Shown one piece after another: positions 46,036-63,816 of a stretch of 64,000 nt of DNA. Under the pieces are notes generated by a model, which had not been told where the DNA came from, ran no database searches, and worked only from the letters and a program-made list of their open reading frames with translations. The stretch's first letter is position 1; every line of letters begins with the position of its first letter. Origin of the DNA: Pavona decussata (Eukaryota); assembly GCA_977016875.1 (NCBI GenBank), contig CDRNST010000143.1, positions 1,922,001 through 1,986,000 of the forward strand, in the 5' to 3' direction. The translations under genes were made by a program, and so were the position numbers.

Positions 46036-46155
46036 CCAATAGTCAGTTAGCTATATTGCACGTGAAAGTTTTCTGGGAAAGGGCAAAAATTCGATAGTAC
46101 ATGAAAAGGCAATTCATAGAAAACGCAACCAAACGTGCTGTGGTGCATGCTGTCA

Positions 46156-46196
46156 TTGGCTATAAAAAGCACGGTATTGTCTTTCGGAGGTCAGTA
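46156..46196 (+). promoter_or_regulatory. Core promoter of secreted-protein paralog 1
   Basis: ATTGG next to TATAAAA (46161-46167). Inr TCAGTA at 46191-46196, with its A 32 nt from the TATA. ATG at 46240. Confidence 0.75.
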
Positions 46197-46239
46197 TTCG
46201 TGGATTTCGTAACGGACAGCAGAGATTTCATTGAGCAAA

Positions 46240-49200
46240 ATGGGAAGTTTTGCAGCGTTAGTTTTCAGTTCCTGCATTGTTGTAAGCTTCTGCTCGGTTC
46301 CTTTGGCGGTCGACGAAAACGACTTTATCAAGAAAAGGGAAAAATGTGGGGAGGTGAGTAAATTCAAGTTGAAACGTGAGAGGGCTCTACCGTACTGCTT
46401 TGAGAGCTGCATGAACTGAATAATTTGCATAAAACTTATCGAGGCACCGAGAGAAAGAAATTACACATAGATATGTTACTAATGGTTAAAAATCAAGACT
46501 AATCAGATACGACAAAGCTAACATTTATCAGAGGTAACGAAGGCTAAGTGAAAAGGGAAGCAGGTACTCTTTGCTCGATTCTGTTGTCAAATATATATCC
46601 CAGTTGTATCCTCTCAAGGCACGCTTTTCACTTTTCGGACAATCTTTCTGTCTCCGGTATTATTATCCTTCACAGTACACCGCCGCCTGAAGGGATATGT
46701 TTGCTAAATAAACACCTACTGGACATTATACCTTCCGAAATAACCGCCACGAGAAACGTGTCTACATCGAAGATCATCGAAGGTTTTACATTCGCCTGTA
46801 CATGTTTGTTTTTCAGTACCTGACCTACGAGGACTGTCTGAAGGAAGCGTACGCGGCGGCCGAAGAATGCAGGAATTTAAATGACTCACAGCTCACGGTG
46901 AACATTTACGAGATCTGCAGTGACTATCAAGACAAGTTAAAAAGGCTCTGTTTAGCTCACTGTGCCAAAGGTTTGTTGTCATTACTTCGTGACATTGCGT
47001 GACAGTTCGTGACGTTTGCGCTTCTCCCGTGCGCTTGGAAAGGAATTGAAACGACTGCTACGTAGGCTACTTCTAATTCCAATCGTAATTTAAAAAAATA
47101 AATTTGTAACGGCGTGTGCTCTCTTGATTAGAATCTGATAATCTTACAGTAAACGCCATGTCCTTACGTGACTTTGATTCATGACCGTGGTACCACGTGA
47201 CACTTTAATAAGGCTAATCTTTTTCTATTTGTCTGTTACCATCTTCAGCATCCTGCGTGGATTGTTTTCACAAAATGGAAAAGATTGAGGAAAGCTGCGA
47301 TATGTTTACCGAAAAGATAAACTGTGGCCTCAATGCTACAGCGAAGGAATGCAAAGAAACGAAGGTGGCCCTCGTCAAGTACTGCAGCCACAGTGAATGT
47401 GCAGGTGATTACAGTGGTTTGTTGTTCTATTCACTGTGAACTACTAATTGATTTTACCAATCACAGCAATGCAAATTACGCAATGAACCAATCAGACCTT
47501 GAAGAAAAACATTTTCGGATTGGGCTGTACATGTGCAACACGGTTCTCCAAACCCTGACACTATTTCAGACCAAAATATCTATTTTGCCGGTACCCTTTT
47601 CAGACCTGGTCTCTACAATCCATACCCGTTTCCGTAAAATTCTTATCCGTTTTCATACTTTCTGATCAAAATAGTTAAAATCTATACCCTAGCCAAAACG
47701 GCTCAAACACCAATACCCTTTAGCACCACAAGTATCTATATGTAACTTATATAGGGGAGTACCACCCCTCCCCGGAAAAACACAATGGGCGTCAAGCGCG
47801 GGAAAAACATAGACGGGCGGGCGCAAAAGCGCGCGAAAACATGTAATCCTTCACCGATCACCATAATCAAACACCTCTTGTAATACAGTAACACCCGCAT
47901 AAAGATTAAGAACCTCCAGGTTGAAATTCGTCATTTTAGAAACCTGTTATATAAGAACCTTACAATAAATAAATGGGACTTATTCAGGCTGATCTTAAAA
48001 TGTAGGTTCTTAAACGTGGGTTTTAACTGTACTACCAAAATGTGCTACATGGTAACCGACTAATTGTAACATGACAAGCGCCATCATTTGATGCGCACGC
48101 AGTACTCAACAATTTCTTTGTTAATGCACATTAATTTTCAAATCCCAGCCGATTTAATTAAAGCCGTGCCATGTGATTTCCACCTAATTGTACATGCAAT
48201 CCTGTATTTTTCAGTGTGCAAAGAACTTTACTGTCGCAACGGTGGGAAATGTGCCGGACCAACTGCCTCTTGGTGCGCATGCCCAGCAGGATATGGCGGC
48301 GCCTTCTGCCAAAAAAGTGAGAATGGCCTTGCCGGCTTTAGAATCACGGTTTTATCGCTTTTAAATAGAACTCTAACTTTTAAGTCTAGGGGTGGAAGTT
48401 TAAAGGTATATATCAAATACATAATATATTATATTCTATCGTGGTGTTGTTTCAGCCGTTTTCGATATTTTGAAAATGAATTTTGATTCTTGTTTTTATT
48501 TTTAAACTTGGTTAACGGTTATACTGCTATGATAAAAGTGCTTTTGATTGACATCAGCAATCATAGCAGATTTTCCTAGATTCATCAAATTGAACTAAAC
48601 AGAGACTGTAACTCTTAGCCAATGATGCGGTAAGTTGCTTTGAAAAAAGATGAACCTCCTCACTTGAATTTGTCAGTAGTGCCAAGAATGGTAACATTTA
48701 AAGAGATTTGGAATCGCCTTCAAGTCAATGCAGACGACAAACGTTATAATCAGAGATTCGCATTTATGTTTTCTTGATGAGCACATAGATGAGAATAGGG
48801 CAAAATAATTCTGACCTTTGATGCTAACTCAAAACCTCTCAATTTTACTGAGAAACTGAAAACAGCGAGCGCAAAATAAATGTACGATAAACACGTTGTC
48901 ATTTCTGCCGTTTTCAGTAAAAGTTATTCTAAATCTCTTTAATCGTAGCCGGCGGCCAGTAAGGTGTAAATTTTCTTCTAATTTTTCTTTTCCAGGCAAA
49001 TGTGCAGGAAACCCGTGCAAAAACGGTGGCTCGTGTATCGGCGAAAACCTCTGTAAATGTCCATCTCTTTATTCTGGTGCTCAGTGCCAGAAAAAGAGAC
49101 TGGGAACCAAAGAGAACCCCGCAGCAAACTCTCAGGCGATTCTCGACGCCGGCGATAGCCTGGGCAGCGGTATGTACTGGATCCAGCCCCCTGGAGAAAC

Positions 49201-49897
49201 AGTCCCGGCCGAGACGTACTGTGACATGAGCTTTGCTGGCGGAGCATGGATGCTAGCAAGTTATGGCTACGTTCACACAACCTCACTCAATGCTAACACC
49301 AAGGATATACCCAACATGAACAATCCGTTTGGCTACGCATGGCTTCCCACCCAACGGAGTTCTTTAAATGGTGTTATTAATCTCCCACACGGCGCAGTTA
49401 ACATGGCCAATAATGCCCGTTTCATGATCATGGCAGCGGGCAACAATCCAGCTAGCGGGGGCATTGATACATATGCATATGTGTACCGTATTTATCTAAA
49501 AAATAACCCCTACAAAATTACCTTTGCAAATCATAACCGCTATAATGGCGGCCAACCGGGTCGTATGCATGTTCAAGAGTTTGTTATTGAGGCCCTAAAG
49601 GGAGAGAGTGGGACATATATAAGACATGCGCTGGCGGAGTCTCTGGGGGTGACATGGGGCGACTCTTACCCTACTGGTTACGGGTTTAACGACAAAACCA
49701 CTCCATTTGCGGCCTTTGACAAGGGACCCTTTTTCCCAAGTGTTCATGCAGGGTCTGGACGTAGTCCCTGCAGTGGCTGCACCCCAACAAATTTTGACCC
49801 CGATGTGCCGGGTGGGTCTCCTCACTATACTCACCGTGGATGGTACACTGCTAACGGCTATGGAAAAACAGGTCAAACCTCCATTTGGTTTAAATAA
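46240..49897 (+). CDS. Secreted protein paralog 1 (475 aa): signal peptide, 2 twin-CX10C modules, 2 EGF, fibrinogen-like YCDxxxxGGxW domain
   Basis: Exons 46240-46353, 46817-46970, 47249-47404, 48215-48316, 48996-49897. All introns GT-AG, phases 0,1,1,1, total 1428 nt open. Signal peptide MGSFAALVFSSCIVVSFCS. EGFs CKELYCRNGGKC...CACPAGYGGAFC and CAGNPCKNGGSC...CKCPSLYSGAQC. Motif GMYWIQP...TYCDMSFAGGAW. Every exon has a counterpart in paralog 2. Confidence 0.9.
47886..48029. mobile_element. Tc1/mariner-type MITE in intron 3 of paralog 1
   Basis: TA|CAGTAACACCCGC...GTGGGTTTTAACTG|TA. Confidence 0.7.
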
Positions 49898-50364
49898 AGA
49901 CACATTTCTGAGCAACTAAATGTTAGCAATAAGTCGCTTCTACTTAAAGCATATATCTTTTTTGTTGAATTGGAAGAAGCTACATTGTAAACGGTTCTAG
50001 GTAAGGAGGTTGCCCAATCCTCCAAGTCAAGGGCTCATGTTTCAAATGTACTGGCGTGATCAGGTCTTTTCAGGTCAAACCTCCATTTCATAGAGGGGAA
50101 TTTTGATTACAGTAATTGGTCACTAAGACTGGTCTGCAAGTAAAGAATGTATTGGTAACTGAAAAAACGTTATAATACAAGCATATACTCATTTCATTGT
50201 TTTACCCTTTTTCTTGACTCCACTGATTAGTTTTCCTTTACGCCCAGATCCGCAAAAACTTACAATTGAAAATAATAAAAAGCAAGGATCTCTTTTTGTA
50301 TGACAGAGAAACGTAATATTTACCTGTTGCACGAGAAATGACGTTTCAATGGCCACTGGTATTT

Positions 50365-50770
50365 CTTTTTAAGCCTAGTGAACAAATGAGAATGATGTAT
50401 CATTCAGTAATGACACTCGGTGCAGCACTCGGAATTTCTTTTTCCGAGTGCTCCCATCAGGAGTTGAACCTAAGACCTTCCGATTACTAGTTCGGATGCT
50501 CTACCACTGAGCTACAGGAGACTCTTGGAAGCTAAGGCCATTAAACCAGCTTCGATTCATGGGCGAAAATCCTGCATACTGCAACGATTGGAATGTCAAT
50601 GAGTGGCATATGCGCAATGAAAGGAAATGTGATGTAATATTTTTTAACCCTGGTGAACAAATGAGAATAATTTATTACTCAGTAATAACACAGGCAAACT
50701 CAGAAAAAGAAATTCCGAGTGCTCCGATCAGGAGTCGAATCTAAGACCTTCCGATTACTAGTTCGGATGC
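50365..50770 (-). mobile_element. Tandem tRNA-derived repeat/SINE (~275-bp unit, 1.5 copies) with a tRNA-Thr(AGT)-like head
   Basis: Minus strand GTAGCTCAGTGGTAGAGCATCCGAACTAGTAATCGGAAGGTCTTAGGTTCAACTCC (A and B boxes), with no acceptor stem. 50365-50500 is repeated at 50640-50770. Confidence 0.75.
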
Positions 50771-51328
50771 AATTGAAAAAGAAAATTTCGTTAAGAACGA
50801 TCTGATAAAGAGTGATGCATACAGTCATTGACCCGGTAGCAATGAGCAGGATTCAGCAATCCGACAGCAACGGTATGAACATTTTTCCCGTCGTTCACCC
50901 TCCAATGTTAATGTTTCTTTCTCAAATTTCTTATTGCTACGTTTTTGTGTTCGTTTTCTATGTTGTAAAGTTAGCTATTTTACTCATACCTATTGCCAAG
51001 TCGCATTTTCAAATTGTAGCGGTTTTTTTTTTGTTAATTTAGCCTAAATTTTTATGGTATCTCATTTGCACCCCCCCGCCCCCTCCCTCTGTTTTGAACT
51101 GTGTGACGATAGGGTCAGTTTCTAAAATATCCTGAAGAAGAAAGGTCGTGCCTTTCGAAATATTGGAAGGGAAAAATATATTTCCCTGACCGTTAAATCA
51201 GCCTTGCCCTTTTTTGCAATATTAAATCAATAGACTATTCTTTCTCTTCTATTGCATTTTTTGGACTATCCCAGAAGGAAAGTTTAAGATTTGACACCCT
51301 TTTTTGACAGTGTTCTCTCTACCTTTGT

Positions 51329-51765
51329 AACTTAGCTGTAAAATCAAACACGTTTTGACACACCACTGATATTATTTCTAAGCCTGGTAAACAGCTCCAG
51401 CCTAAATTCTCAAGCCGGAGGATTGAAAATGAAGAGAACTTTCAAGATCGAGGAAAAACCAGCAATTGCAGTGTCAACAAGCAAAACATTTTGTATAGAT
51501 TTCCAGCTGAGAACCTGGCTACGAGGAAACACTTCTCGCCGCGGCAAACTTCCGAAATTCTCTTTATCCGGGACCTAAGCTAAACACTCAATCTGACTTG
51601 ATTCGCACGAAAATACTTACTCATGATAAAAAACAAAAGATTCTAAAAATAGTTAATGCACACTTAAACTGTTTTTCTCTACACTTAACTACCGCTCGCT
51701 AAACTACCTTTTTGTATTTTTAGAACTTGAAAATGATATCATGAGAACTTCGCCGAAAACGTTCA
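51329..51765 (+). mobile_element. Degenerate Penelope-like retroelement 3' fragment (GIY-YIG region) upstream of paralog 2
   Basis: Broken frames give QPKFSSRRIENE, VNKQNILYRF and EILFIRD..KLNTQSDLIRTKIL, matching the Penelope GIY-YIG C-terminal pattern as recalled. Confidence 0.65.
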
Positions 51766-52084
51766 ATGTCTACAAAGAAAGTGATAAATATCTCTTAGCT
51801 TTTTCATCTGAAATTTGCTTGTGTGGATTAGGCTTGAAGTTCTGAACGTGATGGAAGGACAGGTCCAGATGCTTCTAACCACTCAGGAATATTGACCCAA
51901 GGCGAAAGAGTGTATTAAATGGCATAGAACAGCTGGATTTGGCATGAGTAAACTGCAAATTCGACTCTTGTCATTATTGTTCTTTCTGGACTTAGAATGC
52001 GAAACACCCTGTTAGGTGGTTAGTTTTCTCTACTAGCCTTTGGAGTGTTGCTGGTACATGCAGGTGCCGAACAGTCAACTCACA

Positions 52085-55000
52085 ATGCACAGTTTTGCAG
52101 TCCTTGTTCTCAGCTCCTGTCTCGCTCTAAGCTTCTGCTCTTCATCTAACTCGTCGAGCCATCATACAGACGTTGCACAAGGAAACAAAACTTGTCAAGA
52201 GGTGAGTGCATGATTCAAGCAATAGTTTGCGGTTCACCTAACCACGTACCACCGCCTAGAAGAAGAAAATCTTTGTCCACGATTATACGTTAACTCTTGA
52301 TATAATGTGAGGAAAAAATCGGATCAGTATAATATGCACTTTCTTTGGGTAAAATAGGTTATTAACTTATTGGAGAAAGACAGTCATACTTACTGATACA
52401 GGCATACCGATATTCATTATGTTTGGCAGCCCTTTTCTGAATGATCTGGGAGACAGTTTTCTGAATGTTTCTTTTTGGGAGAATGTATCAGTTTTCTGAA
52501 CGTATCTTTTGGGAGACAGTTCTCTGGATGTATGTTTTAGGCGGCAGTTCTCTGAATTTATCTTTTAAGAGACAGTTTTCTGAAAGTATCTTTTGGGAGA
52601 CAGTTTTCTGAATGTATCTTCTGAGAGACAGTTTTCTGAATGCATCTTTTGGGAGACAGTTTTTTGGATGTATCTTTTGGGAGACAGTTTTCTGAAAGAA
52701 TGTTTTAGGCGACAGTTTTCTTAACGTATCTTTTACGACACAGTTTTCTGGGTGTATGTTTTGGGCGGCAGTTTTCTAAATGTATTATTTGGGAGACAGT
52801 TTAATGGATGTATCTTTTGGGAGACAGTTTTTTTGAATCTATCTTTTGGGAGACAGTTTTCTGGATGTATCGTTTGGGAGATAGTTTTCTGGATGTATTA
52901 TTTGGAAGACGGTTTTCTGGATGTGTCTTTTGGGAGACAGGTTTTTGCAGTTTTCTGGGTGTATCATTCGGGAGAAATTTTTCTGAATGTATGTTTTGGG
53001 AGAGAGTTTTCTGAATGTATTTTTTAGGAGACAGTTTTATGGATGTATGTTTTAGGCGGCAGTTTTTTGAATGTATCTTTTGGGAGACAGTTTTATGGAT
53101 GTATGTTTTAGGGGACAGTGTTTTGAATGTATGTTTTGGGAGACAGTTTTATGGATGTATGTTTTAGGCGGTAGTTTTTTGAATGTATGTTTTGGGAGAC
53201 AGTTTTATGGATGTATGTTTTAGGCGGTAGTTTTTTGAATGTATCTTTTGGGAGACAGTTTTATGGATGTATGTTTTAGGCGGCAGTTTTTGAATGTATG
53301 TTTTGGGATACAGTTTTATGGATGTATGTTTTAGGCGGCAGTTTTATGGATGTATGTTTTAGGCGGCAGTTTTTGAATGTATCTTTTGGGAGACAATTTT
53401 CTGGATGTATGTTTTAGGCGGCAGTTTTTGAATGCATCTTTTGGGAGACAGTTTTCTGGATGTATGTTTTAGGTGGCAGTTTACTGAATGTATGTTTTAA
53501 GTGGCAGTTTTTGAATGTATGTTTTAGGCGGCAGTTTTATGGATATATGTTTTAAGCGGCAGTTTTCTGGATGTATGTTTTAGGCGGCAGTTTTTCAATG
53601 TATGTTTTGGGAGACAGTTTTCTGGATGTGTCTTTGAGGCGGCAGTTTTGAATGTATGTTTTGGGAGACAGTTTTCTGGATGTATGTTTTAGGCGGCAGT
53701 TTTTGAATGTATGTTTTGGGAGACAGTTTTCTAGATATATGTTTTAGGCGGCAGTTTTTGAATGTATGTTTTGGGAGACAGTTTTCTGGATGTATGTTTT
53801 ATGCGGCAGTTTTTGAATGTATGTTTTGGGAGACAGTTTTCTGGATATATGTTTTAGGCGGCAATTTTCTGGATGACTTATCTGTTTTAGGCGGTAGTTT
53901 CCTGGGTGTATGTTTTAGGCGGCAGTCTTATGGATGTTTGTTTTAGGCGGCAGTTTTCTGAATGTGTGTTTTAGGCGGCAGTTTTCTGGATGTATGTTTT
54001 GGGCGGCAGTTTTATGGATGTTTCTTTTGGGAGACAGTTTTCTGAATGTATCTTTTGGGAGGCAGTTTTCTGGATGTGACTTTTGGGAGACAGTTTTGTG
54101 AGTGTGTATTTTGAGAGAAAGTTTTCTGGATGTATGTTTTGGGAGACAGTTTTCTGAATGTATCTTTTGGTAGACAGTTTTTTGAATGTATCTTTTGGGA
54201 GACAGTTTTCTGGATGTATCTTGTAGGAGACAGTTTTGTGAATGTATCTTTTGGGAGACAGTTTTCTGGATGTATGTTTTAGGCGGCAGTTTTATGGATG
54301 TTTCTTTTGGGAGACAGTTTTCTGAATGTATCTTTTGGGAGGCAGTCTTCTGGATGTGACTTTTGGGAGACAGTTTTGTGAGTGTGTATTTTGAGAGAAA
54401 GTTTTCTGGATGTATGTTTTGGAAGACAGTTTTCTGGATGTATGTTTTGGGAGACAGTTTTGTGAATGTATCTTTTGGGAGACAGTTTTCTGGATGCATG
54501 TTTTGGGCAGCCGTTTTTTGAAGATTTGTCTTTTGGGGCAGTTTTCTGGATGTATCCTTTAGGAGGCAGTGTTTTGAATGTATGTTATAGGTAGCAGTTT
54601 TCTATATTGATGTTTTTGGCGGCAGTTTTCTGAATGTATCTTTTGGAAGACAGTTCTCTGCATGTATCTTTTGGGAGACAGTTTTCTGGATGTATGTTTT
54701 GGGCAGCCGTTTTTTGAATATATGTCTTTTGGGGAAGTTTTTTGGATGTATCCTTTAGGGGGCAATGTTTTGAATGTATGTTAAAGGTAGCAGTTTTCTA
54801 TATTGATGTTTTTGGCGGCTTTTTTTCTGAATGTATCTTTTGGGAGTCTGATTTTTGGATGTGTCTTTTGGGAGGCAGTTTTCTGAATGTATCTTTTGGT
54901 AGATAGTTTTCTGAATGTATCTTTCGGGAGACAGTTTTCCAAATTTATCTTTTGGGAGACAGTTTTCTGGATGTCTCGTTCGGAAGACAGTTTTCTGTAT

Positions 55001-58000
55001 GTATATTTTGGGAGACAGTTCTGGAGGTATCTTTTGAGAGTTAGGTTTCTGAATGTATCTTTTGGGAGACAGTTGGGAGACGCTTTTCTGAATGTATCTT
55101 TCGGGAAACAGTTTTCTGAATGTATCTTTTGGGAGACAGTTTTTTGGATGTATCTTTTGGGAGACGGTTTTCTGGATGTATCTTTTGGGAGACAGTTTTG
55201 TGAATGTATCTTTTTGGAGACAGTTTTCTGGATGTATCGTTTGGGAGACGGTTTTCTGGATGTGTCTTTTGGGAGACAGTTTTTTTGCAGTTTTCTGGGT
55301 GTATCCTTCGTGAGACATTTTTCTGAATGTATGTTTTGGAAAGGTGTTCATTATTTATGGGGAGGGGGGGGCTGGCAAATGGGGAAACGGAACGCTTGGA
55401 ACTTTTTGCACCCCCCTCAATGATGAAGGATAACTTTTGTTGCCCCCCCCCCCCAGCTAGAAAATGTAAACGTTTTTGACCCCCCCCCCCCCCCCCAATG
55501 ATGCATTTATTATCAGACCATACTCTCATCCTCCACTTCTTGCTTTAATCACCTGCTTTTTGCTTGCTTCACTAGCAGTAGAAGAAACTATTACGTATGT
55601 TAATGTACAGGTTCAAGTGATACAGAGTGTAATCACTAGTCTGGAAAATACCACAAGGCAGCTAAAGAGGGTGTTTGTGCAACTGGCAAACACTAAAAAA
55701 AAGTGGAGTGAGTAGGAGGCGGAAAGAGGCAAAGAGAAAGGCAAAACAGAGGAAAGAAAAGAGAAAAAGACTGTGCCAAGCTGCAGTTGTGGAGCCCTTG
55801 ACTGGGCAAAGTGCAGAAGAAGTTATATTGCCACTGTCAGATGACATGATCTGCCTGCTAAACACTCACAGCCTTCACCCAACCGTTCTAGTGAAAGGCC
55901 TAGATCAACTTATTTCTGAGGGTGGCCTATCTGTTGATGCATCCAGTGAAATCGAAACATATCTAACTAGCAAATCCATTGAATGGAAACCATTTGCTGT
56001 GTAAACTATTGGTGTGACATTATGGTTTGATTTACTGTGGTATAAGTACATTAAATGTCATGCGGTTCTGGAGGAATTTAAAAAAACCCAAAACTAATGA
56101 TATCAACCTTCAAACTTTTTTGTCCCCCCCCCCCTCTTCCCCAGATCCAGAGCAAAACCTTTCTGACCCCCCCTAAATAGGGGAGTAAACTTTGCTTGCC
56201 CCCCCCTCCCATTTGCCAGCCCCCCCCCCCCCCCCTCCCAATAAATAATGAACACTCCCTTAGTGCGGCCGTTTTTTTAACGTATCTTTTTAAAGGCAAT
56301 TTTCTGAATGTATCCTTTGGGAGGAATTTTTCTGAATGTATGATTCGGGAAGCAATTTTCTGAATGTATCTTGCTGGAGGTAGGTTTCTCAATGAATCTT
56401 TTGGAAGGCATTTTTCAGATTGTATGGTTTGGGAGGCAGTTTCTCAATGTATCTTCCAGGAGGCGTTTGGTAAAGTAACAAATTGGCACGATATTGCCAG
56501 AGAGGAATTCCACGGAGACTTTCCTTATACCTTATTATGTTTTGTTGTTTATTCTAGTACTTGACGTATGAAGAATGTGAGCGGCAAGCAGCTGCTCTGA
56601 GCGGACAATGTCGCAAGTCTAACAGCTCAAGTCCAACCGCTGACAAGATTTGTGCCGAATTCGAAAGAAATTTGAACAAAATCTGTGTCGCTTACTATGC
56701 AAACGGTACGTGGTCAGGAAATCTGTATAAATTTGCAAGACAGTGTTAGGTCTAAGAAGTCGTAAAGGGTAATACTTTTGTACTTGGACTGGTGCAAGGA
56801 TTCCGGATCATGACTTTTGTGAACCAAAATATGTCAATTCACGTACCTGTCAGTCAGAACAGGGGACGGTCCGATAAGTATTTTTATTTTTTAAGTCCGT
56901 TCTCTATCGCGATTTGAGATAATTTTAAGTATAATTTCTGTTATTTGTTCATATCAGTAACGAAAAAGATTTTAATATGAAGCTTTCAGAATCGTGGAAT
57001 TTTGAAAAGCTATGGCCTAGTTAAAATCCATAACCGTATTACACCTAATGAATGTATGTTTCTGTGCGTTAAATTGAGCCGATTAAAAAAACAAAAACAA
57101 CAACAAAGCACATACACACACAAAACCCAGGATAGTGGATAGGATTTGGGCCAAGATGTGTCTGCAAGAATACTGAGCTCTCATGAAATGAATATTCTGT
57201 CTTCTGTGCCGGGGTCTGCAAATTCTGTTACGAGATTAATATAGCTCGCTGTCTGCATAGTACAAACTTAATGTCTCATGTTACTTTTGTTCATGATCTC
57301 CTTTTTAGCATCTTGTCTGGAGTGTTTCGACAGAATGGAAAATGTCGTGGAAAGCTGTAAAAACTTTGCTAAGTTAGTCAACTGTGAACTCAATACCACG
57401 GTGAAGGAATGCGAGGAAACAAAAAATGCACTTACCAAGTACTGTAGCAGTAACCAGTGCCAAGGTGATTATAAACCTCTAGTACCCTTAATAGTTACAC
57501 TGAAAGTTTCAGCTTACAGTTGTGTGACTGTATTTGGCTGGGGGAATATATACCTTCCCAATTTTTCCCATTGGGCTTCCGCGTCAGATGGCGCACACGG
57601 CTAGTTTAGCCTGAATGACTTTTTTAAGGATTCTTTCCATGCATAGTATTGTTTAGTTACCATATTGAATGATGTAACGATATTTGGACGGCACTAAACA
57701 CTCAGGTTCATAGTTCGAGCTGCACAACGATTCCCTTCTAGATGTCGTGAATATAAATTGGAAATATGCTTGTATTTTCCAGTGTGTAAAGATCTTTACT
57801 GCCGAAACGGAGGGAAGTGTGCCGGAGCCTCTTCTGGTTGGTGTAACTGCCCACCAGGGTACGGTGGAGCCTTCTGTCAAAGACGTGAGTAAACTATAAT
57901 TTCTTGAGTCATCTCAAGATGGCCCCCTAAAATAGTATATATCTACACTTGCAAACTAGTTACACTAAAGTGACCTTCCTGGGGACGCCTTATTTTCTTG

Positions 58001-59720
58001 TCTCGCGGTTTTTTGTTACGAAATTTCACAAGTGAGATACTTCCAATTGACCATCCGTTGTTTTTTGTATCGCAGGTATTTCCAATATCAGGCGCTTTGT
58101 TCCTTTTACTTTTAGGATTATCATACTAGGCCATTGTCATGAAAAAAAGTGTAAATTGTTTTGGCAATATTTCTGATTCATGCTTTGTTATCTCAAGCTT
58201 TCATCTGGGACTTTTTAAACCTCCATACCTTGTGAAAATAGCTTAGAGTATTGTGGGGTTGCTTAGTAGGTATTTCTAATATAACGTGATCTGTTCCTTT
58301 TACCTGTATACTGGGTTGCTCAGACAGTTTTTATCCCAAATTGGTTGTCTAATGTGTTATTTACAACACAAATTGAAAACAAGATGAAACGCGAGAAACA
58401 CGCTGTTAATTTAAGTGTTTTAGTTCCATGTATTGGCGCCACACAAAATTGAAATAGAGTGACATCATTCTCGACTCTCGAGAGCCTTTCGACTTGAATC
58501 CATCAGTCAGGCACAAAGGAAAGAGCTCTGAAAGAACTTTAGTCCAGAATGGCCCATGATTTCCTTTGAGCGTGCGCAGACTGCTAAGGAGTTTGTGATC
58601 AACGCCCGTGTGATTATACAAGTCATGATAAGAAGCCACCTTACAAAAAGTGAAGACTAAATTTCAAGCCATTAAGCCAAGTTTTGGCAATGAAGCAAGT
58701 AAGCACACTTTGTTTCGTAGCTCTCGAGGTTATAAAGGGTGACTAATTTCTGCGCGTCTGTCCTGATTAAATTTTCACGTCACATTGAAATATTTTGTTT
58801 TTTATTTGTTTAAAGATAAATGCACAAAAACTTCCTGTAAAAATGGAGGCACCTGTATTGGCGAAAACAGATGCAAGTGTCCACCCCGTTATTCTGGCCC
58901 CAACTGCTCTGTCATAAAAAGCAAACTGGGAACCAAAGACAACCCGGCTACAAATGCACAGGCGATCCTCAACGCCGGGGATAGTCAGGGCAGCGGCATG
59001 TATTGGATCCAGCCCCCTGGAGAAGCAGCACCGGCTAAAACGTACTGTGACATGAGCTTTGCTGGCGGAGCATGGATGCTAGCTAGTTATGGCTACGTTT
59101 ACGCATCGGACTTTAATGCTAATAACAAGGCGATACCTAATATGAATAATCCTCTCGGTTACAACTGGTCCCCCACCAATCGCAACTCCGCCAATGGTCT
59201 CATTAACCTCCCGCATGGCGCAGTTAAAATGGCCAACAATGCCCATTATATGATCATGGCTGCAGGCAACAACCCCGCCACAGGGGGAATTGATAAATAT
59301 GCTTATGTGTATCGTATTTCCCTAAAAAACAAACCTTACAACATCACCTTTACAAATCATAACCGCCTTAATGGCGGACAGCCGGGTCGTATGCACGTCG
59401 TTAACTTCATTGTCGAAGCATTAAAAGGAGAGAGTGGGACATTTTCAAGGTATACCTTGGGAGAGTCCCTGGGGGTGACATGGTCCGACACTTTCCCTAC
59501 TGGTTACGGGTTTAATGAACGGAATGCTCATTATACGGGCTTTGACAAGGGTCCTTTTTTCCCAAGTGTCCATTCGGGGTCTGGTGGAGGATATCCTGGC
59601 TGCACCGCTACAAATTATGTGCCCGATGTGCCAGGTGGGTGCCCTAACTACACTCACCGCGGATGGTACACTGCCAACAGCTATGGGAAAACTGGGCAAA
59701 CCTCCATTTGGTTCAAATAA
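52085..59720 (+). CDS. Secreted protein paralog 2 (475 aa), same architecture as paralog 1
   Basis: Exons 52085-52201, 56558-56705, 57309-57464, 57783-57884, 58816-59720. GT-AG, phases 0,1,1,1, 1428 nt open. Signal peptide MHSFAVLVLSSCLALSFCS. C-terminus GKTGQTSIWFK identical to paralog 1. Confidence 0.9.
52437..55340 (+). repeat. 28-bp minisatellite (consensus GGGAGACAGTTTTCTG(A/G)ATGTAT(C/G)TTTT), ~100 copies, in intron 1 of paralog 2
   Basis: Unit starts at 52511, 52539, 52567, 52595 and so on. Variant AGGCGGCAG units. Degenerate continuation at 56261-56470. Confidence 0.95.
55341..56260. mobile_element. TIR element (PIF/Harbinger-like MITE) inserted into the minisatellite
   Basis: Left gtgttcattatttatggggaggggggggctggcaaatggg and right cccatttgccagccc...ctcccaataaataatgaacactccct are inverted. 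The satellite resumes after 56260. Confidence 0.8.
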
Positions 59721-60098
59721 GGGGGCATTTTTCCAGAGGTGCAACTAAGTGTTTGAAAAAAGGGTTTGTAGCAGAAGCATATATATCTTCTAGTCAGTGT
59801 TTATCGTTTAATTGGACGAGACTGCATTGTATAACTTTTAGGTAAGGTGAGTGGTTTGCTTTCAGTAATGCACCGACGTTATCGGGTCAAACATTGAGGG
59901 ATTTCTAATAATTAAGACAGGGATAAATTACTAAGTATAAGCACAAAGCAGTTGCTTTTTTGTCAGAAGCCATGAATTGTAATCTGCGATTAAAGAGAAT
60001 AAATGTGCTGTTTTAATGTACCGCCGATATAATCGAATGCCGAATGAATTTTAAAAAAACAAACTTGATTTATCTCGAAAAGGAAACGAGAAAGATGT

Positions 60099-60211
60099 AA
60101 TAGGACATTTTCGAGTTGCTTTGCGGAACCTCACTATTCATCATTCATATGCAAATAAAACTAATTTGCTCTTTCATAATGAGGTTCACAGCAACTCAGA
60201 AATGGTCTATT
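60099..60211. mobile_element. Short MITE
   Basis: TIRs aataggacattttcgagttgct...agcaactcagaaatggtctatt. Confidence 0.7.
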
Positions 60212-61670
60212 TTCATCGCGCCAAGTCGTCCTGTTGGGACAGATTTTTTCTTTGCCACGCTCTCAACAAATCATTTGTGTCACCATTTTTCTATATTCCT
60301 CACGCCGTTGGACACTTTCGACATTGCTGATTCTAGGAGTACACAGGACTCATGGCCATTTCAGTACTGGGTAACGGACATGATATAACTAGTAATAATC
60401 GTAGATTAGAGAGTGCGTTCGATGTCATCAGGCTCTTAAGCCCAGGCCAATCTCGATCCCAGGTTCTCTCTCTCTCTTTGTGATGTCAGACGCCCCTGCA
60501 AAATAATCTGCGAGGGATGTCAGATGTGCGTCCCAAGATCCATCGACCCATCCATGACAAGTCCTATAAAATCTCGACTCAAATCCGTATTAGGAAGCGT
60601 TCTTCCGTACGTCGAACGCAACGAGAGCCCAGTAACCAAGTGGTAGAGCATTCGGCAGTTGTCAGTATAGACCATAAGTACGATTCCCGTTAGCCAATCA
60701 CATTTCTTCTTTGCCCTTGCTCCGTTACTCGTAACAAGATGAAAATTAGAAAAAAAAAAAAAAAAAAAAGATGAAAATTAGACAAATCTTTTATTATTTA
60801 AATTATCGATTTGGTGAAAAAGTCGTTAACTTATTAATTGAATCGATCAATTAAGTTTAAAGTTGTTTTAAACGGGACAAACAGCGTTCGTAACAGTTAA
60901 AAAGCTTAAGAAATCGGTAAGCGCAATTGCCGCCCGATTCTACTAAATTAACTAGTGATACAAGTTGTCGCTAAAAGAGTGAGAGTAAGTGGATTCCAAA
61001 TAGAAGACAAAAGAGAATAGAGAATAGCCTGTAGACTGCCTGTCATTAGACAGAGTAATGCTCACGATAAGAAATCTTCCAAAAAAGGAAAAAGGAAGAA
61101 AAATGCTGGAGATGCTGACATTGAGAAAACCAAAAACAAAGAAAGAAACATAACAGTGGGATCGGGGATAAAATCTTCGGCTCGGCAGCTGCGCATATTT
61201 TAATTTATTTTATTTTAACAGTCGATGGGCCTTGTTGGCTGACTCGTTTTAAAGATTTTAGATGCAGCGCACAAGGCCCATGGACTGTTAGCGGCGATAT
61301 CCAAATGGATCTTTTGCACAAGATGGAGGCCATCTTGAATTGCGATGTATCAGTAGAATCACATTAATCTCTGTGGGGCGCCCATGAAGCAAAGCCTGTA
61401 TCAGACAGAGAGTTTTTGGGTGGGATTCTGTGAATTTCTTGTTGAGAGTCCAAAAATATGGCACTTTTTGTAAAATTAGTAGATGAAACAAAAGCCACTC
61501 TCCATTGAGCATGTCCTTTCCGTGGTCAACTCTCATTTTGGTTACTCTGGTTTCTGCAAGAAAATTGGAGAGTTTTTTGGTCAAAAAGTAAGTAATTTAG
61601 TCTGCACTGCGGAATTCTGTGTGCTAAACCCAAGATGGCTTTGCCAATAAACATTCTGTCCCTAACAGAT

Positions 61671-61793
61671 CTGGGCCCAGTTGCTGGAAGCATGGTTAGC
61701 GCTAACCCGGGTAAAATACCATGACAACCTATAGGTTTTAATACCTCTCAACCAATGGTTAGCACTAACCATGCTTCGAGCAGCTCAGCCCTG
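61671..61793. mobile_element. Palindromic MITE
   Basis: ctgggcccagttgctggaagcatggttagcgctaacc...ggttagcactaaccatgcttcgagcagctcagccctg, with AT on both flanks. Confidence 0.75.
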
Positions 61794-62026
61794 ATGAATA
61801 GGGATATTGTAAGGTAGTAGCAGGGTAACTCATTCACGGAGCTAAATTCTCAAAAAAGCACAGCCTACACTCAGTTAAATTTGAAACTCGTGTAGCAGCC
61901 GATTCATCATTAATCTAGACTTGAAGAATGTTTAATACACGATTTGTAACCTTTGTGATTTAGGACCTTTTGCAGCGATTTCTAATAATTTCTAATTATA
62001 AATGAGTTTGGCTATTTTGAACTTCA

Positions 62027-62411
62027 AGGAGCACTGTCATGGAGATTTTGCTGCATTTTGACCAAAACTACTCAAATATTTATCGTAGAACTTTTTTTCT
62101 AACATGAAATTGTTCATAGAGCACCGGGAGGAAAATATCAACTGATTTCTTCGATGACGAACAAACTATAAACCTATTTTCAGCAATTTCTCCAAAATAC
62201 ACAGGAAGAACGTGAAAAAACTGGCCAATTTTTTCAAGTTGTAATCCATTTCCATCCAAGCCATCCTCAGCAAGAGATAACAAATACTAGCTTATCTTTA
62301 CTTGTAGGGCAATTGTTAACAATACTGAACCACTATTTTAACATTTCTTATCGATACAAATATGTTTTTACGCTATTCAAAGGCACGCTAAAAGTTGGTG
62401 ACACTGCCCCT
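62027..62411. mobile_element. Kolobok-like MITE
   Basis: ttca|AGGAGCACTGTCAT...GTGACACTGCCCCT|ttaa. Confidence 0.65.
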
Positions 62412-62802
62412 TTAATAAAGTGTAAAATACAGAAGCACCAGGGGCAAAAAATACCGCAATTCTCATCCCTTGAGCCCGCACGTATTTTAAAATTGTTCCA
62501 ACCGAAGACCAAAAGATCGTAGGCTCTGGGAACGAGGATGAAAATTACCCCGTACTCTAATAACGCCGTGCGCATGTTCGTTATGGTACTATACGAACTC
62601 GTCAATAAAATCTTATTCTCTAAATAATTAGAAAATGTTAAAGAAATTTTTAGCAATTACTTGGAGTTTAATCATAAGCTGTAGACCAAGAAATTAGAAA
62701 TGTGCTATACTCGTTTCCTTTGTATATGACAGTGTATTTGCCAAAGAGGCTTTTCTTTCCAGAAAAGACATGCGTTTAAAAAGTTTGTCATATCTCCTTA
62801 TT

Positions 62803-63245
62803 AACTTAGCTGTAAAATCAAACACGTTTTGACACACCATTGATGTTATTTTTAAGCCTGGTAACAGCTCCAGCCTAAATTCACAAGCCGGAGGATTGAA
62901 AATGAAGAGAACATTCACGGATCGAGGCCAAGGAGAAATCATCAATTGCAGTGTCAACCAGCAAAACGTTTTGTATAGATTTTCCCAGCTGACAACCTGG
63001 CTACGCGGAAACACTTCTCGTCGCCGTAAACTTTCGAAATTCTCTTTATCCGAGACCAAAGCTAAACACTCATTCTGACTCGATTCGCACGAAACTACTT
63101 ACTCATGATGAAAAACGACAGATTCTAAAAATGGTTTATGCCCCACTTACATATTTCGCTATACTTAACTACCGCTCGCTAAACTACCTCTTTGCAAGTT
63201 TAGAACTTGAAAATAATATCATGAGAACTTCGCCGAAAACGTTCA
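62803..63245 (+). mobile_element. Degenerate Penelope-like 3' fragment upstream of paralog 3
   Basis: QPKFTSRRIENE (from 62871), VNQQNVLYRF, GYxGNTSR, FEILFIRD (63033), LNTHSDSIRTKLLT (63062). Homologous to 51329-51765. Confidence 0.7.
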
Positions 63246-63699
63246 ACGTCTACAAGGAAAGTAATGAATATCTCTTGAAATCTGTAATTTGCTTGTGTGG
63301 ATTTGGCTTGAGGTTCTGAACGTGATGAAAATACAGGTCCAGATGCTTCTAACCGCTCAGGAATATTGACACAATGCGAGAAAGAGTATATTAAAATTAA
63401 TGGAATAGAACAGCTGGGTTTGGCTTCAGCATGAGTAAATTTAAACTGCAAATTCGACTCTTGTCATTATTTTTTAAATTCAAATGACAACTGCAAATTG
63501 GAAAAGGTAAAAAACGACAGAACATAGAATCCAAAGTTGCTAAATTCTCACGCTGCCGTATTTGCTCACGGTGATGACCTAAGTGATTCTGTTGTTCTTT
63601 CTGGACTTATAATGCAAAACACTCTGTTAGGTGGTTAGTTTTCTTTACTTGCCTTTGGAGTATTGCTGGTACATGCAGGCACCGAACAGTCAACTCACA

Positions 63700-63816
63700 A
63701 TGCGTAGTTTTGCAGCCCTTGTTCTCAGCTCTTGTATTGCTCTAAGCCTCTGCTCTTCACCTAAGTCATCGAGCAATTTTACAGACGTTGCGCAAGGAAA
63801 CGAAACTTGTCAAGAG
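63700..63816 (+). CDS. Secreted protein paralog 3, exon 1 (gene continues beyond the window)
   Basis: MRSFAALVLSSCIALSLCSSPKSSSNFTDVAQGNETCQE followed by donor GTGAGT. 117 nt, the same length as exon 1 of paralog 2. Confidence 0.85.

Follow-up and report, generated by a model that had tools for sequence, protein, structure and literature searches.

Two complete genes and the first exon of a third lie in tandem in the 64,000-nt stretch of Pavona decussata DNA that was analysed here (the window). Each of the complete genes combines a signal-peptide-like N-terminus, two Cys-rich modules and two EGF modules with a C-terminal head domain, which, judged from its predicted structure, belongs to the fibrinogen/intelectin (X-type lectin) fold class as a subfamily of its own that has no name yet. 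The intelectin-like predicted fold, together with approx. 40% identity to a phage fibre tip, makes a stalked lectin the most likely product. We put the probability that these proteins are stalked lectins which bind glycans and form a subfamily new to the fibrinogen/intelectin superfamily slightly above even.

Gene organization and splicing

The genes occupy positions 46240-49897 (gene 1) and 52085-59720 (gene 2) of the + strand, and each model consists of five exons with a total length of 1428 nt, corresponding to 475 aa (Table 1). Every intron is bordered by GT..AG, the intron phases are 0/1/1/1 in both genes and one terminal stop closes each reading frame. Thus, the two five-exon genes of equal length and phase that an earlier note on this DNA had rebuilt by hand are confirmed, and the same applies to the first exon of a third gene. 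Exons 2-5 of gene 3 are intact on the same contig just outside the window (C143, 1986467-1996072), and exon 5 is approx. 91% identical between genes 2 and 3. The window contains no N.

Table 1. Features of the tandem genes within the window
Feature	Position	Strand	Evidence or remark
Gene 1, 5' untranslated region (minimum extent)	46118..46239	+	Start of spliced contig X4 record 19
Gene 1, exon 1: start codon, signal-peptide-like hydrophobic N-terminus, first Cys	46240..46353	+	Junction 46353/46817 in contigs of 3 studies
Gene 1, exon 2: Cys-rich module 1, C-x10-C ... C-x10-C-x3-C	46817..46970	+	No Pfam match
Gene 1, exon 3: Cys-rich module 2, C-x2-C-x10-C-x8-C-x8-C-x10-C-x4-C	47249..47404	+	Spliced contigs; no Pfam match
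Gene 1, exon 4: EGF module 1	48215..48316	+	Pfam EGF_2 match; junctions in contigs
Gene 1, exon 5 (48996..49897), first part: EGF module 2	48996..49093	+	Pfam EGF_2 sub-threshold; PDB Notch EGF matches
Gene 1, exon 5, remainder: 267-aa C-terminal head domain ending in GQTSIWFK, stop codon	49094..49897	+	AF2 model, NF040941, homologues
Gene 2, upstream region	51489..52084	+	Copy upstream of gene 3 (62971-63699); repeat families D5, D6, D8
Gene 2, exon 1: signal-peptide-like N-terminus	52085..52201	+	Gene model
Gene 2, exon 2: Cys-rich module 1, Tyr in place of last Cys	56558..56705	+	Gene model
Gene 2, exon 3: Cys-rich module 2	57309..57464	+	Gene model
Gene 2, exon 4: EGF module 1	57783..57884	+	Pfam EGF at cut-off
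Gene 2, exon 5: EGF module 2, C-terminal head domain, stop codon	58816..59720	+	Pfam; six-frame match, 76% identity to gene 1 head
Gene 3, exon 1	63700..63816	+	Exons 2-5 past window end

Gene 1 is transcribed and spliced as modelled. Its four introns (46354-46816, 46971-47248, 47405-48214 and 48317-48995) are exactly removed in assembled contigs from three separate studies, the runs of which are probably RNA; this evidence, which the earlier note had asked for, covers gene 1. An 896-nt contig lists exons 1, 2, 3 and 5, and, going by the coordinates of its record, 105 nt remain for exon 4. The upstream regions of genes 2 and 3 share 83-91% identity, which indicates that the promoter was duplicated along with the gene. 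Secretion is suggested by the signal peptide predicted from the sequence, and the tandem array of genes of secreted type that the note described is real.

These data also bear on the possibility that the genes encode a venom or toxin component, or that they entered the assembly as phage or bacterial contaminants. A Cys-rich secreted layout and the close phage kinship of the head would fit such an explanation, but no toxin family match was obtained, and the genes reside on a 4.8-Mb coral contig, contain four spliceosomal introns, encode EGF module 2 and the head in a single exon and have orthologues in many coral genomes. Contamination is refuted by the spliced transcripts, and we consider the venom or contaminant explanation as a whole highly improbable.

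The Cys-rich and EGF modules

Database searches were performed exon by exon, and full-length work was based on the database orthologue P0009 from Acropora. In both genes, exons 2 and 3 plainly show twin CX10C spacing, and neither exon matches Pfam. In the full-length AlphaFold model of P0009, the N-terminal modules are helical with low confidence (mean pLDDT 45), and a word search with these modules retrieved acroporid orthologues only. As far as sequence comparisons indicate, stony corals appear to be the only group with the twin-CX10C modules and with the complete architecture.

The six-Cys pattern of EGF-like modules (PF00008 / PF07974) was found at the Pfam threshold. EGF module 1 scores 23.2 bits with EGF_2 in gene 1 (cut-off 22.1) and 21.5 bits with EGF in gene 2 (cut-off 21.5). 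EGF module 2 reaches 22.1 bits in gene 2 (cut-off 22.1), while the EGF_2 score in gene 1 is 20 bits and just below the same cut-off; this module matches Notch EGF in the PDB.

The C-terminal head domain

Sequence likeness of the approx. 265-aa head to known models is confined to the first ~50 residues, which contain a YCDxxxxGGxW motif. The Fibrinogen_C model PF00147 yields 16.5 bits for gene 1 and 18.0 bits for gene 2, compared with a gathering cut-off of 22, and only positions 8-46 of its approx. 220 positions align to the head. The coral head passes the NCBIfam model NF040941 with 49.4 bits (cut-off 30, residues 14-54), a model that comprises 46 residues and represents the opening segment only. 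Hexacoral copies do not have the A-subdomain disulfide of Fibrinogen_C, which is formed by the first Cys and the Cys of YCDM, and read NAQAILD where octocoral heads read SCRDILD. Octocoral copies and part of the bacterial ones possess the first A-subdomain Cys, which phage copies lack.

The AlphaFold model (AF2) of the head has a pLDDT of 91.6. The known structure closest to this model is human intelectin-1 (4wmq_A; Z 13.3, 228 of 267 residues, rmsd 4.0), followed at a clear distance by FGL1, H-ficolin and Angptl3 (Z 8.1-8.7) and the procollagen C-propeptide (Z 5.2). Foldseek searches with this model also placed XEEL and intelectin-1 on top, with a TM of about 0.48, and the overall fold of the model is that of the intelectins or X-type lectins. 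Whole-domain sequence kinship to intelectin was not detected by phmmer and a profile search, which align only ~50 residues of intelectin-1, XEEL and the lamprey lectin. The designation as a fibrinogen-like domain in the earlier note is therefore appropriate for the first ~50 residues by sequence, whereas the domain as a whole is intelectin-like in its predicted fold. Assignment to the fibrinogen/intelectin fold class supports a lectin-type reading. Members of the head family align over their full length and share the motifs IPNMN, GNNP, NHN, DSYPTGYG and GPFFPSxH as well as SIW[FV][KR] at the extreme C-terminus; 29 columns are invariant among the 36 sequences of alignment A1.

Distribution and relatives of the head

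The family was initially considered to be lineage-specific, but the head is found throughout Anthozoa, including octocorals and sea anemones, in the brachiopod Lingula, the choanoflagellate Salpingoeca, phages and bacteria. In phages, homologues that are 38-45% identical over the full head make up the C-terminal tip of tail-fibre-like proteins with N-termini of the tail-fibre or virion-protein type (PHROGs). One of them is encoded in a structural module with Phage_tail_APC and Gly_rich_2, and further homologues occur on IMG/VR viral contigs. Bacterial relatives show 29-34% identity and carry the head at the end of secreted fibre-like proteins with MopE repeats in Myxococcota-type MAGs. Elsewhere, the head is carried by choanoflagellate coiled-coil proteins and by a brachiopod PAN-EGF protein, and in all of these homologues it is placed at the distal end of a stalk or fibre. 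The Lingula protein matches a bulb-type lectin domain below threshold only, and this domain is not claimed. In an exhaustive search, every full-domain match among the 150 listed extends to the last residue of its protein, and 88 cluster representatives were found at E<=1e-30.

Members of the Acropora cluster and other named members are all annotated as "uncharacterized" or "hypothetical", except for one evident "glp-1" mislabel. Thus, the domain combination, which the earlier note did not recognise, carries no functional name in any source examined. A literature search by gene identifiers returned nothing, and when intelectin or fibrinogen was searched for in connection with corals, phages and choanoflagellates, no title or abstract was retrieved that bears on the head family.

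Phages appeared paraphyletic and Lingula nested within Anthozoa in a quick tree, but neither placement is robust: the AU test rejects neither a phage clade (p 0.615) nor anthozoan monophyly (p 0.785). Because the phage clade is not rejected, no donor is claimed. We propose only tentatively, and with some doubt, that the head is one homologous, putatively cell-surface-binding module which is shared at approx. 40% identity by phage tail-fibre tips and a holozoan gene lineage (choanoflagellate, brachiopod and anthozoans), with bacterial fibre tips as outgroup. Corals and choanoflagellates might use a phage- or bacterial-type tip, acquired in an ancient transfer, for binding bacteria, or phages might have borrowed an early animal lectin head.

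EGF modules and fibrinogen-class heads are common in matrix proteins, and the genes could encode a structural or adhesive component of the extracellular matrix, the skeletal organic matrix or the egg coat instead of a soluble lectin. PDB matches show that EGF modules with a globular C-terminal head resemble tenascin- and MFAP4-type proteins. Fibrinogen-related subdomains have been reported for the coral skeleton protein USOMP-5 (PMC6824150), which would also fit a matrix role. However, the Acropora millepora cluster members have no skeletal-matrix name, and the cluster names lend no support to identity with USOMP-5, as no listed Acropora cluster member is so named. In a profile-profile comparison with an ORF from the C204 array elsewhere in this genome, presumably a member of a USOMP5-like family, only the first 55 columns of the head align. 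Moreover, the head family is present in non-calcifying anemones, octocorals and a choanoflagellate, and its closest relatives are receptor-binding fibre tips. A matrix function thus appears unlikely.

Divergence and selection

The 602-Mb genome contains three copies of the gene. Identity between genes 1 and 2 increases from the N-terminal modules (16/39 in exon 1, 19/51 in exon 2, 28/51 in exon 3) towards EGF module 1 (25/33) and exon 5 (222/301). This recount agrees within one residue with the graded divergence noted before (exon 2 ~19/51, exon 3 ~29/52, EGF1 26/34). The two variable patches recognised at that time (HTTSL/YASDF and DKTTPFAA/ERNAHYTG) are real, and a third one reads RSPCSG/GGY-PG. 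The dN/dS of the head is 0.20 between genes 1 and 2 and 0.45 between genes 2 and 3, which indicates that the head is under purifying selection. Change is concentrated in the three short patches, as one would expect of a surface involved in binding.

The localised variable patches in the heads of these tandem paralogues could alternatively reflect a diversifying innate-immune or allorecognition repertoire, in which positive selection drives the copies apart towards different targets. Such a repertoire would be consistent with the fast-evolving N-terminal modules and with the tandem copies that are also found in Montipora, Oculina and Porites. In a per-exon analysis of genes 2 and 3, dN/dS rises to about 1.15 in exon 2 only, but this value is derived from 49 codons and would be explained just as well by relaxed constraint, and the head stays well below 1. 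Three copies genome-wide and a head dN/dS of 0.2-0.45 are not those of a large diversifying repertoire; the earlier description as a diversifying array is therefore not sustained, and we regard this explanation as rather improbable.

Proposed function

According to the stalked-lectin reading, the gene product would be a secreted protein of approx. 50 kDa that consists of a stalk and a head. The stalk would comprise the signal peptide, two disulfide-stapled helical modules of ~50 aa with twin CX10C spacing and two EGF modules, and would present the 265-aa globular head at the extreme C-terminus. The head would putatively bind cell-surface carbohydrate, probably of microbial origin, and the coral proteins may be soluble lectins, probably assembled into oligomers, that act in the mucus or in extracellular fluid. 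Their oligomerisation and glycan binding are inferred, as is a part in immunity, if any.

This provides a probable fold and a working hypothesis for a family that is called only "uncharacterized" across the coral genomes examined. It also defines a distinct branch of the fibrinogen/intelectin class that has its nearest non-eukaryotic relatives in the receptor-binding fibre tips of phages and bacteria. Should bacterial surface glycans be bound by the head, one recognition module would be employed by phages, predatory-type bacteria, choanoflagellates and corals, which would bear on microbe recognition by early animals and on coral-microbe interactions.

Comparison with known systems

Intelectin-1 binds exocyclic 1,2-diols via a calcium-coordinating ligand site. 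Intelectins and other X-type lectins (human intelectin-1, Xenopus XEEL, lamprey serum lectin) resemble the coral head in size (~270 aa), in their fibrinogen-like opening and in secretion, which is predicted for the coral proteins. In contrast, identity is only 9-12%, the N-terminal stalk of the coral proteins is different, and the C-terminal strand motif GQTSIW[FV]K marks the coral head as a separate family. Fibrinogen-related domains (ficolins, angiopoietins, FGL1, tachylectin-5A; PF00147) share the opening YWI...YCDM..GGxW and the general fold class (Z 7-8.7), but the head has no match to their B/P subdomains.

In Bdellovibrio, the tips of mosaic adhesive trimer fibres bind prey glycans, and the combination of a stalk with an exchangeable adhesive tip is reminiscent of the coral proteins, although a fibrinogen-like tip is not described in that study (PMC10769870). 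One bacterial relative of the head shows a weak, sub-threshold match to the N-terminus of these fibres (24.5 bits versus a cut-off of 60). NF040941 is the model of bacterial proteins with a "fibrinogen-like YCDxxxxGGGW domain"; bacterial relatives have the whole head in common with the coral proteins at approx. 30% identity. Cultured cyanophage proteins, as detected by tblastn, match the first ~60 residues only and show a weak fold match (TM about 0.45). In fibre tips of uncultured phages (P0085, P0091, P0095, P0099, P0105; IMG/VR loci L004-L009), on the other hand, all 265 aa are homologous, and the terminal motif and the C-terminal position are alike. Fibre N-termini (PHROGs 1325, 24138, 15727, 18673) and a single Cys distinguish these phage proteins, whereas the coral proteins combine the head with a putative signal peptide, Cys-rich modules, EGF modules and introns.

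Gene models and tandem array

Exon boundaries of genes 1 and 2 were taken from an ORF map and from direct reading of the sequence, and were then checked by script. Both genes total 1428 nt (475 codons plus stop), and all their introns have GT..AG ends and phases 0/1/1/1. Exons 2-5 of gene 3 are all open and lie within the 20 kb of contig C143 directly past the window, with an intron 4 of approx. 7.3 kb.

Exons of the three tandem paralogues, in window positions
Feature	Exons	Strand	Basis
Gene 1	46240-46353, 46817-46970, 47249-47404, 48215-48316, 48996-49897	+	ORF map, sequence reading, script
Gene 2	52085-52201, 56558-56705, 57309-57464, 57783-57884, 58816-59720	+	ORF map, sequence reading, script
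Gene 3, exon 1	63700-63816	+	sequence

The identities between genes 1 and 2 for exons 1-5, calculated by script, are 16/39, 19/51, 28/51, 25/33 and 222/301, which essentially reproduces the per-exon values of the earlier note. Genes 2 and 3 arose by a recent duplication; their exons 5 are approx. 91% identical and the duplicated region takes in at least 600 bp upstream. Most of the 4.3-kb intron 1 of gene 2 is occupied by a minisatellite (window 52367-55283) of about 100 copies of a 28-bp unit, for which periods of 56 bp and 84 bp were scored as well, with 77-87% matches, a strong strand skew (GC skew +0.3 to +0.4) and many spurious ORFs on both strands. Intron 1 of gene 3 is only about 650 bp long and lacks the minisatellite.

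Tandem copies also occur in other corals. Two Montipora paralogues share a single contig, and the 914-aa Oculina and 947-aa Porites evermanni models each seem to combine two tandem genes. These apparent fusions are annotation errors in the database records, as is the name 'Protein glp-1, partial' for an Acropora cervicornis copy.

Transcription and splicing of gene 1

Nine sequencing runs from one organism each contain 22-34% of the words sampled from a 4-kb stretch around gene 1, with fractions of 0.32-0.34 in the runs X1, X3 and X4; the exons of gene 1 account for about 36% of this stretch. Four runs from four studies were compared with this stretch in detail, and assembled contigs from three of the four studies skip the four modelled introns exactly, at GT..AG ends. 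A single 896-nt contig starts at 46118, covers exons 1, 2 and 3 and enters exon 5; none of its listed pieces corresponds to exon 4, for which its coordinates leave 105 nt. The library type of the three splice-supporting runs is a guess ('RNA?'), and we consider them RNA-derived because spliced contigs come only from RNA.

Two short stretches of gene 1, one in intron 3 (window 47842-47975) and one in intron 4 (window 48780-48913), are covered by contigs to a very high depth in each of the four runs, peaking at approx. 16,000 in a coral metatranscriptome, and the loose ends continue in sequence that is unrelated. Both stretches are probably pieces of a dispersed repeat that is abundant and is transcribed from other sites.

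Modules of the stalk

Exon 1 encodes a short hydrophobic N-terminus that resembles a signal peptide, as judged from its sequence. A twin C-x10-C pattern is found in exon 2 and again in exon 3. Neither exon matched Pfam or gave a lead in the Atlas search, and a word search with both retrieved relatives only in acroporids. Exons 2 and 3 appear as long helices when the Acropora orthologue is modelled at full length, albeit poorly (pLDDT 45), and they probably, with low confidence, form disulfide-stapled helical hairpins. Exon 4 encodes one EGF module and the beginning of exon 5 a second, with Pfam scores at or slightly below the thresholds. The octocoral relatives lack EGF and carry two Cys-rich modules of a different kind.

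Sequence and predicted fold of the head

Pfam searches with the last 267 residues, i.e. the C-terminal head at window 49094-49894 in gene 1, returned only sub-threshold matches to Fibrinogen_C and COLFI, confined to the first ~50 residues, and PDB sequences likewise align only there in single-sequence and profile searches. The head passes the 46-position NCBIfam model 'fibrinogen-like YCDxxxxGGGW', and by sequence it is a separate family of its own. The AlphaFold model built from the 36-sequence head alignment A1 is confident (pLDDT 91.6, pTM 0.91). Foldseek put XEEL and human intelectin-1 (TM ~0.48) at the top, above angiopoietin and fibrinogen domains. Structural alignment against representatives gave intelectin-1 (4wmq) a Z of 13.3 (228 residues, rmsd 4.0, 11% identity), followed by FGL1, H-ficolin and Angptl3 (Z 8.1-8.7) and the procollagen C-propeptide (Z 5.2). 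Both rankings argue for a predicted intelectin-like fold within the fibrinogen superfamily.

The first cysteine of the fibrinogen A-subdomain is retained in the octocoral proteins P0053 and P0257 (SCRDILD) and lost in hexacoral, phage and many other copies. Cysteine positions also differ between the paralogues (window 49760-49800 versus 59590-59640; head alignment columns 225-245). Gene 1 has C-x2-C (SPCSGC), and in genes 2 and 3 one of the two cysteines is retained and a new one is present 15 residues later (GGCPNY), which suggests a rewired disulfide adjoining a variable patch.

Relatives in eukaryotes, phages and bacteria

A word search yielded 106 relatives of the head, including full-length 'uncharacterized' proteins of Montipora, Acropora, Oculina and Desmophyllum, partial models of Actinostola and Nematostella, and octocoral proteins of Dendronephthya and Paramuricea. 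Orthologues include LOC114961899 of Acropora and LOC125561390 of Nematostella. Exact look-ups added Salpingoeca rosetta PTSG_00460 (signal peptide, coiled coil, head) and Lingula anatina LOC106172899 (PAN, EGF, head).

One set from the word search is about 40% identical and has phage fibre-like N-termini, which PHROGs assigns to virion or tail-fibre families. One member lies amid co-directional small genes, together with a 2994-aa protein, Gly_rich_2 and a tail assembly chaperone, and six IMG/VR viral contigs encode the head at 38-43% identity over residues 3-267. The set is regarded as phage on account of the PHROGs families, the structural neighbours and the viral contigs. GTDB MAGs (Myxococcota, Patescibacteria and others) encode the head at 29-34% identity, where it terminates secreted proteins that carry MopE-type repeats, and one such protein weakly matches the N-terminus of a Bdellovibrio MAT fibre. 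An exhaustive profile search gave 88 cluster representatives at E<=1e-30; among the 150 matches listed, all full-domain matches extend to the protein C-terminus.

The giant proteins P0107, P0116, P0117, P0124, P0147, P0160 and P0227 (3,000-8,000 aa) contain nothing of the head but its ~55-residue opening subdomain (YWI..YCDM..GGGW), which occurs 7-15 times in separate copies, an unusual repeated use of this segment.

In a tree of 67 heads, the bacteria-like rows, which were assigned by their N-termini and may include a few non-bacterial ones, fall on one side of a branch. Phage-like and eukaryote heads form one clade (SH-aLRT 100), inside which the eukaryote heads are a single clade (support 100). 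An anthozoan clade was not rejected by the AU test (p 0.785). Phage paraphyly, as drawn in this quick tree, is not robust, since a phage clade was not rejected either (p 0.615). The clade supports and AU tests are therefore consistent with a single ancient lineage in eukaryotes, of holozoan age or older, with the phage group as its sister and with losses in many animal lineages. These data are compatible with movement of the head in either direction between eukaryotes on one side and viruses or bacteria on the other.

Copy number and selection

Six-frame protein and profile searches of the 602-Mb genome found the full head only in genes 1-3, and this head family is small. About 100 other places match the opening subdomain only, among them two separate arrays, one on contig C117 and one on C204. 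The dense C117 array (G000:C117:1266000-1442000) contains ~25 long ORFs of ~470-510 aa, LamG-like by eye upstream of the YCDM segment, and that on C204 (G000:C204:791000-1330000) contains ~15 ORFs of ~230-250 aa; only the opening subdomain is held in common, and a C204 ORF aligns with A1 over 55 columns only.

Nei-Gojobori estimates of dN/dS for the head are 0.20 (gene 1 versus 2) and 0.45 (gene 2 versus 3), compared to 0.12-0.14 for EGF1 in all pairs and 1.15 for the 49 codons of exon 2 between genes 2 and 3. Head differences among the paralogues concentrate in three short patches. Between genes 1 and 2, dS of the head (~0.74) is below that of the neighbouring exons 2-4 (0.94 to saturated), for which earlier gene conversion within exon 5, or a constraint on codons, could be the cause.

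Possible function

The proposal in the earlier note of a lineage-specific, diversifying secreted recognition array is only partly borne out: the tandem paralogues are real, but the head also occurs in phages, bacteria, Salpingoeca and Lingula, and three copies with a head dN/dS of 0.20-0.45 do not indicate diversification. Among the 150 matches listed, the head sits at the tip of the stalk in all full-domain relatives. The best-supported mechanism, for which we infer binding, oligomeric state, location and role, would be that of a secreted, stalked and probably oligomeric carbohydrate-binding protein. Carbohydrate binding is suggested by the tip position, the lectin fold and the kinship to fibre ends, as phage and bacterial fibres, at their receptor-binding ends, carry the closest non-eukaryote relatives of the head.
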